From Zygophlyctis sp. KS116 (taxonomy: Eukaryota > Fungi > Chytridiomycota), in the NCBI GenBank assembly GCA_054661495.1, contig BAAFSQ010000187.1:1-19646 (forward strand): a stretch of DNA of 19,646 nt, read 5' to 3'. Position numbers and translations under genes: made by a program. Positions 2,501 through 12,376 of this stretch are shown in pieces; positions within the stretch are counted from its first letter, which is position 1, and every line of letters begins with the position of its first letter. The notes under the pieces are model-generated. The model searched no databases. It was not told where the DNA came from and saw only the letters and a list, made by a program, of their open reading frames with translations.

Positions 2501-3916
2501 TTACTTTGGTACACCAAACAATAATATTCTCAACTTTCCCTCTTCATGAAACATGAATCGCTTTCTAAATTCTAATGCGAGGGCTATCACTTCTTGTCTG
2601 GATGCTGTATTAGGCCCCTTATTTAATAATATATTCATCTTTGATTTCAGTTTCTGATCTTGAATGTCTAAATTTTTGCATGTATCTGGCAGACCATATT
2701 TGTCCTGATACATTCTACAAAGCTTTTGAGCGACTCTTTCACGTCCAGGAATGGCTCTAACAACCAAAATGTAACGATATAAATCATCCTTTGTGGAATT
2801 TTCAGCATCATAAAATGCCCATGTCACCCAACAATACAATTCTAATCGCGCATAATCATACTCTGTTTGATCAGCTTCAACAGACCCAAATAAGCTAGGT
2901 TTACTTTCACCAAGATCAATAAGTTCCATGATATCATCTGGCCTAATGATGACATTTAATGGTCTTATATCACCGTGAATAAGGCCATATTGATCCCTGA
3001 ATCTTTTCCCGAGAGAAAGATATTCATTTAACTTTTTAAAAAGATGTTGACGTGCAGAATTAGACAATCCAATCTCTGATTTAAATTTTCGTACTGTATG
3101 AGATAAATATTCCGCAAAAGTTATTCCAGGAATCATTTTATAAATCATGATTTGGTTTTTAGAATCTGCATGCACCAATCTCTTTGTAATTTTCAAATTT
3201 TCGACTTCTCTTTTAAACGTTTCATTACTATCAGTCCAACCATGTTCATAAAGTACTTTAACAACAACATCATATTTCCCATCACATATTTGTGCTTGAA
3301 ATGAAGATCCACTGACTCCCGAGCCCAAATGTTTTATCAATATGTATACCGTGCCATTGTAAATCAGCTTTACTGGCAGATCAAGCCTGCCTACTGTTAC
3401 TGTTACTGCTACTATTTTAGGCAAAATACTAATACCTTTTGAATTATTAATTATTCTCTGCAACTTGAATCCTGTGACAATTGGAATATCATTTTTCGAA
3501 TCTAATCCATCTTGTACATGAACCAAATGTTTTTGAATTTTTCTAATAATTTCAGACAATTCATGTCCATCTACCCACACTTTAAATTCCTCAATCAATT
3601 GTAAAATATCCTTGATTGAATCCTTTGATAGCGATCCCAATGCCTGTTTTTGCAACAAATCAACAATATTCTTAAAAATAATCTTCAACTGTTCCAAATT
3701 AAAGCCATATCTATATAATTTCTTTGGATGTTTATAAGGATTGTTTAGAATTTCTAAAATTGACCAAACAGATGATTTGATTGGATAAAATCCAAATTGT
3801 GGCACTAGATCAGTTAATGCCGATTGTATAATTGGTAAAACTATTTCTGATTGGTGAGTTGAAAGAGAATAAACGGATGTTACAATGAATAAAGTCAAAA
3901 ATCTACTGATTATCAT
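2501..3916 (-). CDS. Signal-peptide-bearing atypical protein kinase-like protein, 471 aa, single ORF
   Basis: Hydrophobic N-terminus MIISRFLTLFIVTSVYS. Gly loop LGSGVSG, VVVK lysine, alphaC Glu (FKREVENL), catalytic loop IHGDIRPLNV, metal-binding LIDLG; no clear APE motif. Confidence 0.85.
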   Translation of the reverse strand: MIISRFLTLFIVTSVYSLSTHQSEIVLPIIQSALTDLVPQFGFYPIKSSVWSILEILNNPYKHPKKLYRYGFNLEQLKIIFKNIVDLLQKQALGSLSKDSIKDILQLIEEFKVWVDGHELSEIIRKIQKHLVHVQDGLDSKNDIPIVTGFKLQRIINNSKGISILPKIVAVTVTVGRLDLPVKLIYNGTVYILIKHLGSGVSGSSFQAQICDGKYDVVVKVLYEHGWTDSNETFKREVENLKITKRLVHADSKNQIMIYKMIPGITFAEYLSHTVRKFKSEIGLSNSARQHLFKKLNEYLSLGKRFRDQYGLIHGDIRPLNVIIRPDDIMELIDLGESKPSLFGSVEADQTEYDYARLELYCWVTWAFYDAENSTKDDLYRYILVVRAIPGRERVAQKLCRMYQDKYGLPDTCKNLDIQDQKLKSKMNILLNKGPNTASRQEVIALALEFRKRFMFHEEGKLRILLFGVPK

Positions 3917-4146: not shown

Positions 4147-5148
4147 ATGCTTGAAAGAATTTCACATTTTTTAAAAGAAAAAGGATTTAAAGACTTGGAA
4201 ATTTATAGTATTAATACAAGTCCTTTAGAAAAATCATGGATTTTACCTGATAATATCGGACTATTAACTCTAGAAGCAAGTCTTTTTCTAGTGCATAAAG
4301 GGATTTTTATTTTTGCAGTCACATTTTACTTGTATGATAATAATGTAATTTACATTGAAAAAATCGATTCTTCTGGATACTATAATCTAAAAAATAACTT
4401 GTACAAGTCTGTTATTCAAGCTCTTTTAGAGAATTTTGGAGATAAAACTCTATATTTATTTGCAAGAGCTCAACCACAACTCTTGTTTCCTGAATCTAGT
4501 AAAAATCCCTCCAAATCAATTAAAAAGGTACATTTCAACTTTAAGATTTAGGAGCGTGATCTTGTTAAATGGTGGGCATCAACCTTGTCAGAATCTTGTT
4601 TAAAAGGACATTTTTATGTTCCAGGGGAATCAGAGAAATCTATACAAGATATTTCTAAACTTTTAAACTGTAATTGGAAATTTGGAATTCCATGGGACTC
4701 AAACTTGAATGCAAATCAAGTCATTCCTTCTTTTCCTGATGATGTTAAAGTCAAAGCTTTAAAATTATTAGACTCTTACTCTAGTATAAAAGATTTTGAA
4801 AATATTTTACAAGTGACTGGAGAATGTGGATCTGGAAGATTTTCAGGATTTTTTTCCTGCAAATTAAAAAAATTCAAGAATGAATTGATAGATTTAAAAA
4901 ATATCAGTTACAGTGACTATATTAACCTCTTCAAAACCTTGATGGACTCTGATTTTTCTACTAGAGAATTAGCTTTAAAAAGTAGTCAAAAATTGTTGGA
5001 TTTTCTCTCTAAATCAGGAATTTCCAGTCAATCTCTACCAGTGACAATGACTGGAGAGATTTGTGTAAAACAAGAAAAAAAGCGTGAATCTACTAGTGAA
5101 CCAGTCTTGATTTTATCGTCAAATTTGATAAAGAAGACTAAACGTTAA
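4147..5148 (+). CDS. RTT109: Histone H3K56 acetyltransferase RTT109 (KAT11), 325 aa
   Basis: Motifs YIEKIDSSG, LFARAQPQLLFPES, LVKWW, IPSFPDDVK, GECGSGRFSGFF. Intron 4528-4551 (24 nt, GTACAT..TTAG, phase 0) joins the two ORFs; ATG at 4147. Confidence 0.88.
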
Positions 5149-5185: not shown

Positions 5186-5778
5186 ATGTCAAACTCAACT
5201 CTAATTCCACTTCATTATGCCTGGGTCTTTTGGTACATGCACAGATCTCCTGGATCAAAAGTCCATGACTATAATTCATCAATCGTTCAAGTCTCTTCCT
5301 CATTTAAATCTATCCAAGACTTTTGGGCAGTGTACGCTCATCTAAAAAGACCATCAGAACTTGCCCATGTGACAGAATATCATCTGTTCAAGTCTGGAAT
5401 TAGACCGATATGGGAAGACGAAGCTAATTTGACTGGAGGAAAATGGATTTTAAGACTAAAAAAAGGTTTAGCGTCTAGATTTTGGGAAGGACTTGTGCTT
5501 GCATTGGTCGGCGATCAATTTGAAGGTTCGATCGGAGATGAAATCACTGGAATTGTGGTTTCTATTCGTCACGGTGAAGATATTATCTCTGTATGGAATA
5601 AAACTGCTACAGATGGAAGAGTAACTATTCGTATTAGGTAATTTAAAATTTCTTAATATTTAGGGATACGATCAAGAAAGTTTTAAATCTTCCTTCTAGT
5701 TGCATTATGGAATATAAAGCTCATAAAGCATCTGTAGAGGATAAAAGTTCTTTTAGAAATACATCTAGTTACATGTAA
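5186..5778 (+). CDS. EIF4E2: Cap-binding eIF4E-family protein, class II (4EHP/eIF4E2-like), 188 aa
   Basis: Motifs WVFWY, FWAVYAHL, YHLFKSGIRPIWEDEAN-GGKW, SRFWE, ISVWN. Intron 5638-5663 (26 nt) adds RDTIKKVLNLPSSCIMEYKAH, typical of the 4EHP C-terminus. Confidence 0.88.
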
Positions 5779-6258: not shown

Positions 6259-8199
6259 TTATTTATCAATGTTTGGCTCCTCTTCAAAGCTGAATACAAA
6301 TGTGCTGAGTAAGGCCCAGTCCCAAAAAATAAGAGCATATGCTAATCTCCTCCAAGCAAAATTAATGCCATCTGCTCTCCTATGGAAATAATCAAATAAC
6401 CAATTATCTATCAGGTGAGATGATGGTATTAAATTGACAAATTTATCAGTGTAATAATCTCGTCTATAGTCAATTCTTTGAAGAGAGATATGTTCAAGTG
6501 AAGAGCAAGAGTTGAATACAATAGGATTTAATTGGCGAGGTGCTCCTAATATTTCCATAGTAAGCGATTTTAGAGTTTTAGATTTACAAACACTTTTAGA
6601 GAATTTTATCCAATTTTTACGGCTAAATTGTAAATCTACCAATCCAAGAATAAATAAATCAGTTAAACTTTGAGTCCAGGTTCCCATTCTTGTGAGAGGA
6701 ATATTAATTTTATGCAGAGCTAATTGTCTTAATTTTGGAACCAATTTATCCAAAACTTTCAAGGTAGTAGGAGAAACTGTCCAAAGACTCATAAATCCTT
6801 CAGCAATTTCAGTCGAGGAGCTAAAAAACAATTTAGAAATTATAGGGCATTCTACTGAGAGTGTTTTGAGAATCTTCATAAAATGTTCATCATCATTTAT
6901 AGACCAAACCGCCAATCCTGTGAGTTTCTTGAGGCCTTTTAGATAAGATGCATTTATAGATACGTTTATATCTGTAATGATTGAAAGACTTTTCAAATTC
7001 TTTAATGAAGAAATTGATTTATAAAGCTTATCAAGTCCATTGGTATTAAAAATTTGATAATCAAACGAAAAAGCTTCCAAATTCTTTAGACGCTTCAAAG
7101 ACATTGCCAATAATTCACATTGCGCAAAAGGAGTACAAAATGCCAGTTTTTTTAGATTTTTACCATAAAATAAGTTTGCTTCTAGAGGAGAAAGACTATT
7201 ACTGAAAATGAGCTGAGCCGTAGAGCAAAAAATGAATTCTTCCAATTGATTTTTCGAAATTAGTTGTATTAATTCATCTCCAGACATACTTTCAGCAACA
7301 GTTTCTGTCATAGAAAAGCTATGTAGTAGAGGTATTTCCAAAAGAGTCGAGAAGAGCAAAGTTCTAGAGTTATAAGAAACATGTATATTTTCAAAAGTCA
7401 CATTCTTTAGTCCCACTGCAGATTTTAAGAATGTAGAAAAAACTTGTACAAAATCATCAGACATTGAACAATGTGAAATACTCACATCCTTTACTTGTAA
7501 ACCATTTGCAGCTTTAAATATAGAAAAATGATCTTCAATATTTAATCTTGATTCGAGGCTTGCATTTTCCGTAAAACTTATCCCATTAATTTCCAGTTTA
7601 TCTAATTTTGTATCATTACTCTTTAATGCATAAATTATCTGATCAACATTCCCAAAAGTCTGTATTCCTCTATGATCCAATACCAAAACATTTGCCAAGT
7701 CTGCATATTCCCAATCATGAAGTTTTACTGATTTTAAACGTAAATCAAAACTAGAATTAAAACTAGAATCAAAACTCTCATCCATGACCTCATTTCCACT
7801 AATCTGATGTATTAAGCCAATACATTTATGATTGATTGCATTTGATATTTCCAAATTCGGGTAAAGATATATTGGCTTACAAAATCTTTCAATTTTCATA
7901 ATTGGACTGATAACATTATAAAAAGATTTCGAAACCAATCCCAGTCGCATATAATCCCCAGCTCCCAGATAATCCCCCAAAAGATTTACTATGAGATGGC
8001 TGGAATCAAACGATTCTAGCAGTCTCTTATAATTGTCCTTTCTACCTATTTTCTTGAACCGATTATGAATATTTTTAGGTCTTTAACATTAGCATTATAA
8101 ATCTTACCTTGCGATCAATGCATCTTGTAAACCAATAGCATTGGCAGAATTGAGTAAAATGAAGAAACTCAATAGACCACAAAACAATCGCAAGCACAT
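6259..8199 (-). CDS. Signal peptide + F-box-like motif + RNI-like leucine-rich repeats, 637 aa
   Basis: The frame of ORF 6259..7980 stays open to 8080. Intron 8081-8107 (27 nt, GTAAGA..GCTAAT..AAAG) links it to exon 8199-8108 encoding MCLRLFCGLLSFFILLNSANAIGLQDALIA. F-box-like LIVNLLGDYLGAGDYMRLGLVSKSFY, then many LxxLxL units (LDKLEI, LKNVTF, LKKLAF, LKSLSI, LRQLAL, LEHISL). Confidence 0.78.
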
Positions 8200-8250: not shown

Positions 8251-9115
8251 TTATTCTTTAGAAATTATATTTAGAAATTCCTGTTCTGTAAATCCTAAAA
8301 GCCCTACAGACTCTAAATGCATCTTTTGTCTTTTTAAAACATCAATCAACTGTCCTTGTTTCTTAAATCCAAGTAATAAATCTCCTTTTTGTTTAATTAA
8401 TTTCTGATTTTCCAAGAATAAAACATCAAATCTAGACTTGTACGTATCTTGAGACTCTTTAACTTGACTAGAAGCCTTTGATAATAATATTTTTAATTTT
8501 TCAATTTCATTTAATGCCCTATTTAACCTTGATTCTTTTGAATTTCCATCTGAAATCACATTTTTCTTTTCTCTAGAGAGTAATTCCAATTCTTTAGAGA
8601 GTTCTGAATTTCTAAATTCTAAATCTGTCCTTGCCTTTTTTAAATCCTGTATAAAACTAGTATTTTTTTCCAAATTCAACTTTTGTAAACCAATTGTTTT
8701 ACTAGTTTTTTTTTCCTGATCTTGAAAATTCTTGATTTGTAATTGTAATTCCTTTATAATAAGATCTTTTTCAGAATTTAATCCTAGATAATCATCAATT
8801 TCCTTTTGTAATAGAGTAATTTTAGTTTTTAGAATCTTGATTACAGCTTCCAACCCATTTTTTTCCTTTTTACTAGTCCATTCAGTCTGTAAATCCACGG
8901 TAGTAAGTCCAATAAAAGGACCAATTCCATTCTCTGCAGCACAAGAGACTTTAAAAGGTTTATTAAGAGTTTCCAGGCTCTCTGTGACATCCTTTTCTAC
9001 TTTTAACACAATCTAGAAATATAAAATTTAAAAAAAATACATTTGCACATTCTTTAGAGAGTAGAGAATTTCTTACTCTTAATTCCTGTTCTTTTTGTAA
9101 TAATTCCTTGAGCAT
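8251..9115 (-). CDS. TEX9: TEX9-like coiled-coil centriolar/ciliary protein, 278 aa
   Basis: C-terminal signature GFKKQGQLIDVLKRQKMHLE...FTEQEF and a long coiled coil. Intron 9013-9040 (28 nt, phase 0) joins the first exon MLKELLQKEQELRVRNSLLSKECAN. Confidence 0.8.
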
Positions 9116-10672: not shown

Positions 10673-12305
10673 CTATTGCCGATGGATTTTATATACATAA
10701 AACTTGTTGAGAATCGCTTGAAATATTCCAGCCATAAAGCAAATAATTGCAATCAAGTAAAAATACGAGGATCTGGTCCAGTCTTTAGTTGCTTCAAAGA
10801 AAGCAACAGCCTAAATATAAAAAAGATTAAAAATATACCAAAAGATTTCCAATAGCAACTGTCAATAGCCATATTGCAGCACAGCTAGATTTCATTCTAG
10901 GTCCAACTTCAGTATAAGTGAAATTAAGCCCAGAAACAGAAAATAAAACTTCACCAATTGTTACAAGTACATATGGGATAAGGAAATACGCTGTTGAAAA
11001 TCCTTTTGATTTACAGACCTGGAATGTGATGCCATTAGATATAATAGTGGTATCTTCACAGATCAAGTCTACACGAGATTGTAAAATTCCACAGACAATA
11101 TATGCTAGTCCAGAAATAATCATTCCCAATACCATACGATTCAGTGAGCCAAACTTGTCTGGAAAACGTTTGTCAATAGCCGGATATAGGTAATTGGCGA
11201 ATAAAGGCGATATTATCACTATAAGTATTGGATTCGTAATTGTATTAATCATTACTGAATCGAGAAAATTGGTGGAATCCATTTGATCAGTTAATTCCTG
11301 CCAACTACTACCACTTTGATCAAAAGCCATCCTACAGGGTAAATTTGTCTAATTTCAAAGATACCAGAAAAATGGGGCAGGCAAGAGTACACCAATAACT
11401 CTAATCATTTCCAAGTACTCATTTAAAAGTTCCTTCCCGTGAATCTCTTCCACAGCTTCCTTTGCAAGAGTAGAATCACCTCTAAACTTGATCAAATGAA
11501 ATAAATAACTCGAACCAGTTTTTGCAATCTGTCCAGGCAAAAAAACTCCAGCGGGTGGTACTATCCGATAACATGGTTTACCAATCATGAAAATAAAAGT
11601 TGCTAGTCCCAATACTCCAGCACATAATCCAAATACAACTGGATATCCATCCCCATCATTCCCATAAAAATTCTTTTCTTGAATTAGAGGTGCCACGCCA
11701 GCTAAAATCGCACCTACATTTATTGCCATATAGAAATAGTTGTAGAATTTATTCAATCCATGTTTTTGAATTGAGAGAAATTGATCTCCTCCCAGAGCTG
11801 AGACACATGGTTTTATACCACCTGTACCAATAGCAATCAGCAGTAGTCCGATTAACGACGGCCATGCGGGTATATTTGGTGGCACGCCCAACCAATCTGG
11901 AACAGCAGTTGTGGCTAATAGTATAGTACCAGCAACATAAACTGATGATAGTATACTGATTGTCCAGAATTTATTCAAGAATGAATCTGAAATAGCGGCC
12001 CCAACAAGAGGGAAAAAGTAACACAACATATTAAATGAATGATACAGTTCCTTTGCTTCATTCATTGTGTATCCCAGCGAAGTCACAAAGTAATTTCGTA
12101 ATAGAGGCCTGATCCCATAGAAACAAAATCGCTCTGCTAATTCATTTGGAATAATGAAGAATACAGCTTTCGGCAAAGATAATGAATTATCGTGAATTTC
12201 GTGGACTAGATCATCAATTTCAAGCTCCTGATATACAATTTCTGATTTAGAAGATCTATCTACTTTCTATGATTAATCATCAAACGTTACAGATTTTGGA
12301 TTCAT
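10673..12305 (-). CDS. POT/PTR2-family proton-dependent oligopeptide transporter, 515 aa
   Basis: Motifs NELAERFCFYG (ExxERFxYYG), GTGGIKPCVSALGGDQF, FYNYFYMAINVGA, GEVLFSVSGLNFTY. Introns 12267-12290 (24 nt), 11332-11364 (33 nt) and 10811-10838 (28 nt) give one continuous frame. Confidence 0.93.
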
Positions 12306-12376
12306 TTTGAACAGAAGCCGCTTCAAGCGTATCAAGCAATGCGATCAAAGCAAAGAAACAAACAAACTGCATAGTT

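Follow-up and report, generated by a model that had tools for sequence, protein, structure and literature searches.

A conserved signal-peptide-like leader on a chytrid F-box-like/LRR protein suggests export, perhaps into a host cell

The gene described here raises a simple question of where its product works. A conserved signal peptide on a cytosol-type F-box-like/leucine-rich repeat (LRR) module is the core puzzle of the locus, which occupies positions 6259-8199 on the minus strand of a 19,646-nucleotide stretch of chytrid DNA (the whole stretch analyzed, referred to as the window). To our knowledge the molecular basis of chytrid-host interaction is almost unknown, and we know of no fungal case in which exported F-box proteins redirect the SCF ubiquitin ligase of a host. 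F-box/LRR proteins with an export signal are already known in bacteria and in one insect. The combination of leader, F-box-like motif and LRRs, common to this gene and a few relatives, suggests on the strength of sequence that the protein is exported, perhaps into a host cell.

The gene model consists of two exons and a predicted product of 637 amino acids, with all parts of the gene on the minus strand. Exon 1 (8108-8199, ATG at 8199-8197) is 92 nt long, corresponding to 30 codons plus 2 nt (phase 2), and encodes the signal-peptide-like leader and ~10 further residues. The leader itself spans 21 codons (8137-8199), with one Arg in the n-region, a hydrophobic core of 12 residues and a c-region of Ala-Asn-Ala. 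A predicted spliceosomal intron of 27 nt (8081-8107) follows, with the donor AG|GTAAGA and a GCTAAT 10 nt before the acceptor AAG. Exon 2 (6259-8080) supplies the third nucleotide of the split codon, then 606 codons and, at 6261-6259, a TAA stop; the junction creates the split codon AGA (30 + 1 + 606 = 637 aa). The first 14 residues of exon 2 form a basic linker (8038-8079). A preliminary description of the locus had joined the 92-nt exon in frame to the F-box/LRR reading frame through the 27-nt intron, and every feature of that model is present at the positions given; the leader, the basic linker and the C-terminal hydrophobic stretch likewise read as described. Searches and folding used exon 1 (window:8110-8199:-) and, as a separate sequence, exon 2 (window:6262-8079:-).

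The first consideration is whether so short an exon and intron are real. An in-frame TAA lies immediately 5' of exon 2. Within the exon-2 reading frame, ATG first occurs at codon 44 (7948-7950), which falls inside the conserved F-box-like motif, and a start there would cut it. In comparison to the ~35%-identical orthologue P0002, the best-conserved 20-residue block comprises exon-2 residues 19-38 (75% identity), and since this block lies 5' of the ATG at 7950, translation must begin further upstream. Enumeration of all ATG/GT/AG combinations returned a single in-frame alternative, which pairs a 2-codon exon with the poor donor GTTAAA and was rejected as it would delete conserved residues. Read-through from the upstream coiled-coil gene was also considered and rejected: the stop of that gene shares the frame of exon 1 in this stretch, but in the relative this region contains additional stops and a 1-nt indel. 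The gap between the gene and the stop of its upstream neighbor is 51 nt, which is normal for this locus, where the nearby KAT11-like gene and the eIF4E gene are spaced by 37 nt.

Comparison with L004, a 95% identical relative found in a different metagenome, provides further support for the model. The ATG and an open 92-nt exon are retained (L004:3746-3837) with eight substitutions, half of them silent or conservative; the intron is again 27 nt, with two substitutions and GT/AG intact; and exon 2 carries a 6-nt in-frame indel 5' of its first ATG. Among DNA contigs from four freshwater metagenomes, which are fragmentary, the only indels in the coding sequence are of 12 nt, in frame and within exon 2, while a further 6-nt deletion occurs in the spacer 5' of the ATG. 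Introns of this size also occur in the adjoining genes. In eIF4E, removal of a 26-nt intron (5638-5663) recovers the conserved C-terminus, and a 24-nt intron (4528-4551) joins both halves of the neighboring KAT11/Rtt109-like gene. As a control, a hydrophobic mini-exon model was possible for 4 of 45 ORFs of the genome, consisting of the window gene, one other plausible real case and two that are not signal-like.

The alternative in which the intron is unused and translation starts at the ATG at 7950, yielding a cytosolic LRR protein of 563 residues, is very improbable. Its basis is that the public automatic gene call for a relative starts at the equivalent ATG and that a search for RNA runs containing the stretch returned none, such that the exon junction stays a prediction. 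Against this, the shorter protein would lose the best-conserved block of the family, the 6-nt in-frame indel and the low divergence mark the region 5' of 7950 as coding, four lineages have an in-frame leader exon of their own, and the public gene calls disregard the introns of these leader exons. The two-exon gene is thus well supported as real, with its junction predicted from sequence.

Relatives of the protein are few. An exhaustive search of 1.84 billion protein representatives recovered five family members, P0001 (93% identity), P0002 (~35%), P0004 (26%) and the fragments P0003 and P0005, with exon 2 aligned over its full length to P0001 and P0002. A word search found one near-identical protein, a profile word search for more relatives added generic LRR proteins and nothing else, and a search of JGI metagenome contigs returned no relatives. 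Within the same genome, contig C124 carries two paralogues in tandem and C86 a fragment, which brings the total to three copies and a fragment. P0002 is an orthologue in a rearranged neighborhood, because its contig also carries the adjoining eIF4E and KAT11 genes. The family is very small and lineage-restricted, an orphan that Pfam does not recognize and whose starts are misplaced in public gene calls.

A leader is a trait of this whole small family, with each lineage having its own, which extends the earlier observation of a signal-peptide-like N-terminus in the window gene. In L005 the leader exon is 32 nt (2228-2259), is followed by a 35-nt intron with a perfect TACTAAC and is in frame with the public start of P0002; L007 has an exon of the same length (48-79), also with a 35-nt intron, and the variant CACTAAC. 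The paralogues on C124 (L003) use a 50-nt exon (1888-1839, minus strand) and a 28-nt intron. All four of these leader introns, including that of the window gene, are phase 2. L006, the locus of P0004, has neither leader exon nor intron and its protein opens directly with the hydrophobic leader. Every leader in the family combines one basic residue near the start with a hydrophobic core of ~9-13 residues; in the window gene and both orthologues, the core gives way to small residues at -3/-1. The downstream linker is free to vary from one relative to the next, in its length as well as its sequence, and a Lys-rich patch is present in each.

The leaders were assessed by rule-of-thumb criteria, namely a positive n-region, a hydrophobic core of 7-15 residues and small residues at -3/-1. 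By inspection and hydropathy, a heuristic approach, these signal-peptide characteristics occur in the window gene and in four other lineages. The window leader reaches a KD 9-residue maximum of 2.68, compared to 2.60 and 2.11 in the leaders of the two calreticulin-family genes of the genome, which it matches in length and build. The short hydrophobic cores and the charge balance, also heuristic measures, favor a cleavable signal over a membrane anchor, and the leader looks like a cleavable signal peptide. Two other assignments were rejected. A mitochondrial presequence would be amphipathic and basic, where this leader is hydrophobic, and for a reverse signal anchor, with the repeats facing the cytosol, the cores (~9-13 residues) are too short and the flanking charges favor an N-terminus-in orientation.

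The conserved F-box-like three-helix region covers exon-2 residues 22-67 (7879-8016), with the invariant Cys67 as its last residue. At E ≤ 10 neither Pfam F-box model (PF00646, PF12937) matches the window protein. Searched genome-wide at E ≤ 1, PF12937 returned 47 candidates without the window locus, in a genome that contains at least 30 canonical F-box genes by PF12937 search as well as Skp1 genes. In the orthologue P0002 an F-box-like Pfam match is detectable in register (residues 89-120, 15.4 bits, E 0.016), below the cut-off of 24.3. A profile comparison using hhalign aligned the N-termini of the family (A5) in register with 14 canonical F-boxes of the same genome (A4) at a probability of 45%, a P of 2.2e-4 and a score of 22.7. 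None of 200 column shuffles reached that score (9.1 ± 2.1, maximum 18.4), and the reversed alignment scored 8.9.

The start of helix 1, normally Leu-Pro, is Asp-Pro in four of the six A5 rows, Asp-Ser in the window copy and Asp-Leu in a paralogue. At the position of the V-[CS]-K-[RK]-W junction the protein has Val-Ser-Lys-Ser-Phe, with Phe replacing Trp. The model of exon 2 places helices at residues 26-34, 40-49 and 51-67, the order of an F-box (pLDDT 61-81), and puts the Val-Ser-Lys where helix 2 meets helix 3. The equivalent of helix 1 is the most conserved segment of the entire protein. When the N-terminal 186 residues were modeled alone (pLDDT 69.5), no significant fold match was obtained (Foldseek against PDB, E > 0.2; VIA; atlas), and the best VIA match was to an unrelated chain (Z 5.9), with FBXL3 at Z 4.2. 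The nearest named language-model neighbors are all F-box/FBXL clusters (0.93-0.95), which serves as a lead only. With the in-register match to the F-boxes of the same genome on one side and the lack of Pfam and fold matches on the other, the F-box identified earlier is weakly supported, and the motif is probably a diverged derivative of an F-box.

The body of the protein is an LRR solenoid (6430-7731, exon-2 residues ~117-550) composed of ~15 strand/helix units of the ribonuclease-inhibitor/FBXL type. A profile search of PDB returned ribonuclease inhibitor (RI)-like LRRs at E 3.5e-11 to 1e-5, while the Pfam LRR_14 model remained below cut-off in the four family members it matched (best E 1.5e-8). 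The full-length AF2 model of exon 2 (pLDDT 73.4) also has ~15 repeats; in VIA, FBXL2, FBXL17, NLRC4, RanGAP and RI are tied at Z 19-21 over 300-400 residues, and Foldseek aligned TIR1 and COI1 over almost the full length (TIR1 over 587 columns). Both profile and fold confirm the LRRs proposed previously and place them in the ribonuclease-inhibitor/FBXL class of intracellular repeats, a class characteristic of cytosolic proteins.

The C-terminal hydrophobic helix (6286-6345, exon-2 residues 579-598) is preceded by Arg-Arg and followed by an acidic tail of 8 residues. The KD19 of the segment is 1.52 in the window protein and P0001 and 1.82 in P0002, in each case 8-12 residues from the end, and the segment has an acidic residue at its middle and a low model pLDDT. 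It is kept in the orthologues and absent from the paralogues and P0004. A GPI anchor is unlikely given the 8-12 polar or acidic residues after the hydrophobic segment.

In a possible reading, though one on the unlikely side, the protein is a type I membrane or secreted LRR protein that belongs to the surface or secretory pathway of the fungus itself, for example as a receptor or an adhesin. The signal peptide would be cleaved, the repeats would be lumenal or outside the cell, the C-terminal helix would span the membrane and the F-box-like helices would form an N-terminal cap without a link to ubiquitin ligases. Type I proteins most commonly have just such a layout, a signal peptide together with a hydrophobic segment that here lies 8-12 residues before the end, and the F-box goes unrecognized by Pfam and fold searches. 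Additionally, two Cys just after the helices, residues 67 and 86 of exon 2 (the latter at 7822-7824), are invariant across all seven family sequences, as would be expected for a disulfide. Against this, repeats of the RI/FBXL class typify cytosolic proteins, and the helix-1 equivalent, the best-conserved block, aligns in register with F-box profiles. The C-terminal helix has its flanking charges the wrong way round for a type I anchor, and it is missing from the paralogues and P0004.

The same charge asymmetry, together with the position of the segment, is that of a tail anchor, and would fit an endogenous SCF substrate receptor held on the cytosolic face of a membrane. The N-terminal stretch would then not be a working signal peptide and could instead be a second membrane-associating segment or a feature of a single isoform. 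An F-box-like motif and RI/FBXL-type repeats are cytosolic modules, and the genome supplies both Skp1 and canonical F-box genes. The leader weighs against this role, as all five lineages retain it whether or not they have the C-terminal helix, it resembles the leaders of the calreticulin-family genes and its flanking charges favor N-terminus-in, i.e., translocation of the downstream part. A tail-anchored receptor of the fungus's own SCF is accordingly quite unlikely.

The reading ranked first is export. The leader would route the protein into the secretory pathway, from which it follows that the F-box/LRR module would act outside the fungus's own cytosol. For an exported protein with a Skp1-docking helix and LRRs of cytosolic type, the most likely job would be inside another cell, where the adaptor would dock on host Skp1 and present host proteins to the host SCF ubiquitin ligase. 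Export for action in the cytosol of another cell by docking on host Skp1 is put forward tentatively, by analogy, at a probability somewhat short of even. It is placed ahead of the alternatives because the helix-1 equivalent is the best-conserved segment, the repeats are of a cytosolic class, the leader is present in all lineages regardless of the C-terminal helix and there are precedents in other organisms. In the orthologue group to which the window gene belongs, the C-terminal helix, flanked by basic residues on its N-terminal side and by the acidic tail on the other, may serve as a membrane tether. The most specific version, a putative fungal export into a eukaryotic host, perhaps a planktonic alga, with docking on host Skp1 redirecting the SCF and the helix tethering the adaptor to a host membrane, is doubtful when taken as a whole.

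Several observations count against an effector. The expansion and diversifying selection expected of effectors of the SSGP-71 or GALA type were not found in this family; unlike expanded effector families, it has three copies and a fragment, and the dN/dS of the gene is 0.56 compared to 0.16-0.50 for neighboring genes, barely above the highest of these and with no sign of positive selection. The window protein fails the Pfam F-box models and has Ser in place of a proline conserved in its relatives, and the predicted structure of its N-terminal part has no significant fold match. The C-terminal helix could act as a stop-transfer anchor, keeping the protein on the fungus's own membrane, and the invariant Cys pair is also what a lumenal or extracellular protein might have without any part in an SCF. 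In favor of membership in the SSGP-71/GALA-type class, every lineage carries the leader on an F-box-like/LRR protein, with weak support for the F-box itself.

Apart from the question of function, the case shows that gene callers that ignore introns of 24-35 nt cut off signal peptides, and public calls for the relatives of this gene start inside the protein. The secretomes of such fungi are therefore likely to be underestimated. Should the family prove to be exported and to bind Skp1, it would provide a concrete, testable set of candidate effectors.

The part order of the protein, three N-terminal helices followed by an LRR solenoid of RI/CC type, is that of the cytosolic FBXL receptors FBXL2, FBXL17, Skp2 and TIR1, which differ in having no signal peptide. 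The top VIA row is FBXL2 from the FBXL2-SKP1 complex (6o60_C; Z 20.8, rmsd 3.8, 367 aligned), tied with the non-F-box proteins NLRC4, RanGAP and RI, and that alignment begins at model residue 54, such that it does not superpose the family motif on the F-box of FBXL2. Ribonuclease inhibitor-like LRR proteins (RNH1, RanGAP and the LRR domains of NLRs) have the same repeat type, with a helix on the convex side (VIA Z 19-20), and lack the N-terminal F-box-like motif, the signal peptide and the C-terminal hydrophobic helix.

Closer in proposed function are proteins that enter the SCF ligase of another organism. AnkB of Legionella and VirF of Agrobacterium are F-box effectors, as are the GALA/RipG proteins of Ralstonia solanacearum, which share with the chytrid family the pairing of an F-box or F-box-like motif with LRRs and differ in being bacterial, in using type III/IV secretion rather than a eukaryotic signal peptide and in having a recognizable F-box. 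The type III effector RipG7 binds Arabidopsis SKP1-like proteins (PMC4617103). A search of the full-text literature found no fungal or chytrid example of an F-box/LRR protein with an export signal, which is not proof of absence.

The closest analogue is the SSGP-71 family of the Hessian fly (Mayetiola destructor), whose members have a signal peptide, an F-box and ~13 LRRs, are believed to enter the cells of the host and bind wheat Skp1-like proteins through the F-box (PMC4617103, PMC7330099). No sequence relationship between SSGP-71 and the chytrid family was detected. The likeness is one of architecture, as both are eukaryotic and combine an N-terminal signal peptide with an F-box or F-box-like motif and LRRs. 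SSGP-71 is hugely expanded and fast-diversifying, with a recognizable cyclin-like F-box and shown Skp1 binding, whereas the chytrid family, known here from sequence alone, has three copies, a sub-threshold F-box and a C-terminal hydrophobic helix. If the export reading holds true, the chytrid family would represent a second independent case of eukaryotic F-box mimicry beside that of the Hessian fly.

The leader exon of the F-box/LRR gene is joined to the main ORF by an intron at 8081-8107 of the window, and introns following a leader exon were also found at L005 (2260-2294), the locus of an orthologue (~35%), at L007 (80-114), the locus of another family member, and at L003 (1811-1838), a paralogue in the same genome. 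All four are in phase 2, and the leader exons that precede them (92 nt in the window, 32 nt at both L005 and L007, and 50 nt at L003) differ in length by multiples of 3. Based on this shared phase and frame, the four introns may go back to a single ancestral intron whose flanking sequence has since changed in length without loss of frame. The gene of a more distant homologue (26%; L006) has no intron at the leader position.

Upstream lies a coiled-coil gene whose stop codon (8251-8253) shares its frame with exon 1 (ATG at 8199), and no further in-frame stop separates the two in this genome. Read-through into exon 1 was rejected as not conserved because the ~95% identical relative carries additional stops and a 1-nt indel between them.

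Within exon 2, related strains represented by freshwater metagenome contigs have 12-nt in-frame deletions or insertions at 7759-7776 (minus strand), in a loop that is rich in Ser, Phe and Asn, is modelled with low confidence (exon-2 residues about 96-110) and separates the F-box-like helices from the start of the repeats. The two tandem paralogues on contig C124 of the same genome (L002, 523-2064, and L003, 214-1836; both minus strand) are identical over the N-terminal ~170 residues and divergent thereafter, which points to recent partial duplication or gene conversion. For the downstream copy, the profile match extends past the ORF through one TGA and one TAA.

Ultra-short introns occur in neighbouring plus-strand genes: removal of 26 nt (5638-5663) restores the conserved eIF4E C-terminus, and a 24-nt phase-0 intron (4528-4551) connects both halves of the ORF in a KAT11/Rtt109-like gene. 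Spacing between same-strand genes in this region is only 37-51 nt. On the minus strand, a glycosyltransferase gene is followed, 4 nt past its stop, by a hydrophobic 27-codon mini-exon (region about 12262-12372), which a candidate 28-nt intron (GTAACG..AAAG) would fuse in frame to ORF 11355-12176. That ORF has a PTR2-like counterpart on the contig of the relative, and the mini-exon may be another hidden N-terminal exon.

Additionally, the minus-strand ORF at 2501-3916 begins with a signal-peptide-like leader (Kyte-Doolittle-type hydropathy maximum over 9 residues of 2.34) and matches a protein-kinase profile weakly (Pkinase, E 1e-4, below the cut-off), so that, besides the F-box/LRR gene, the window holds a further putative cytosol-type domain behind what looks like an export signal.
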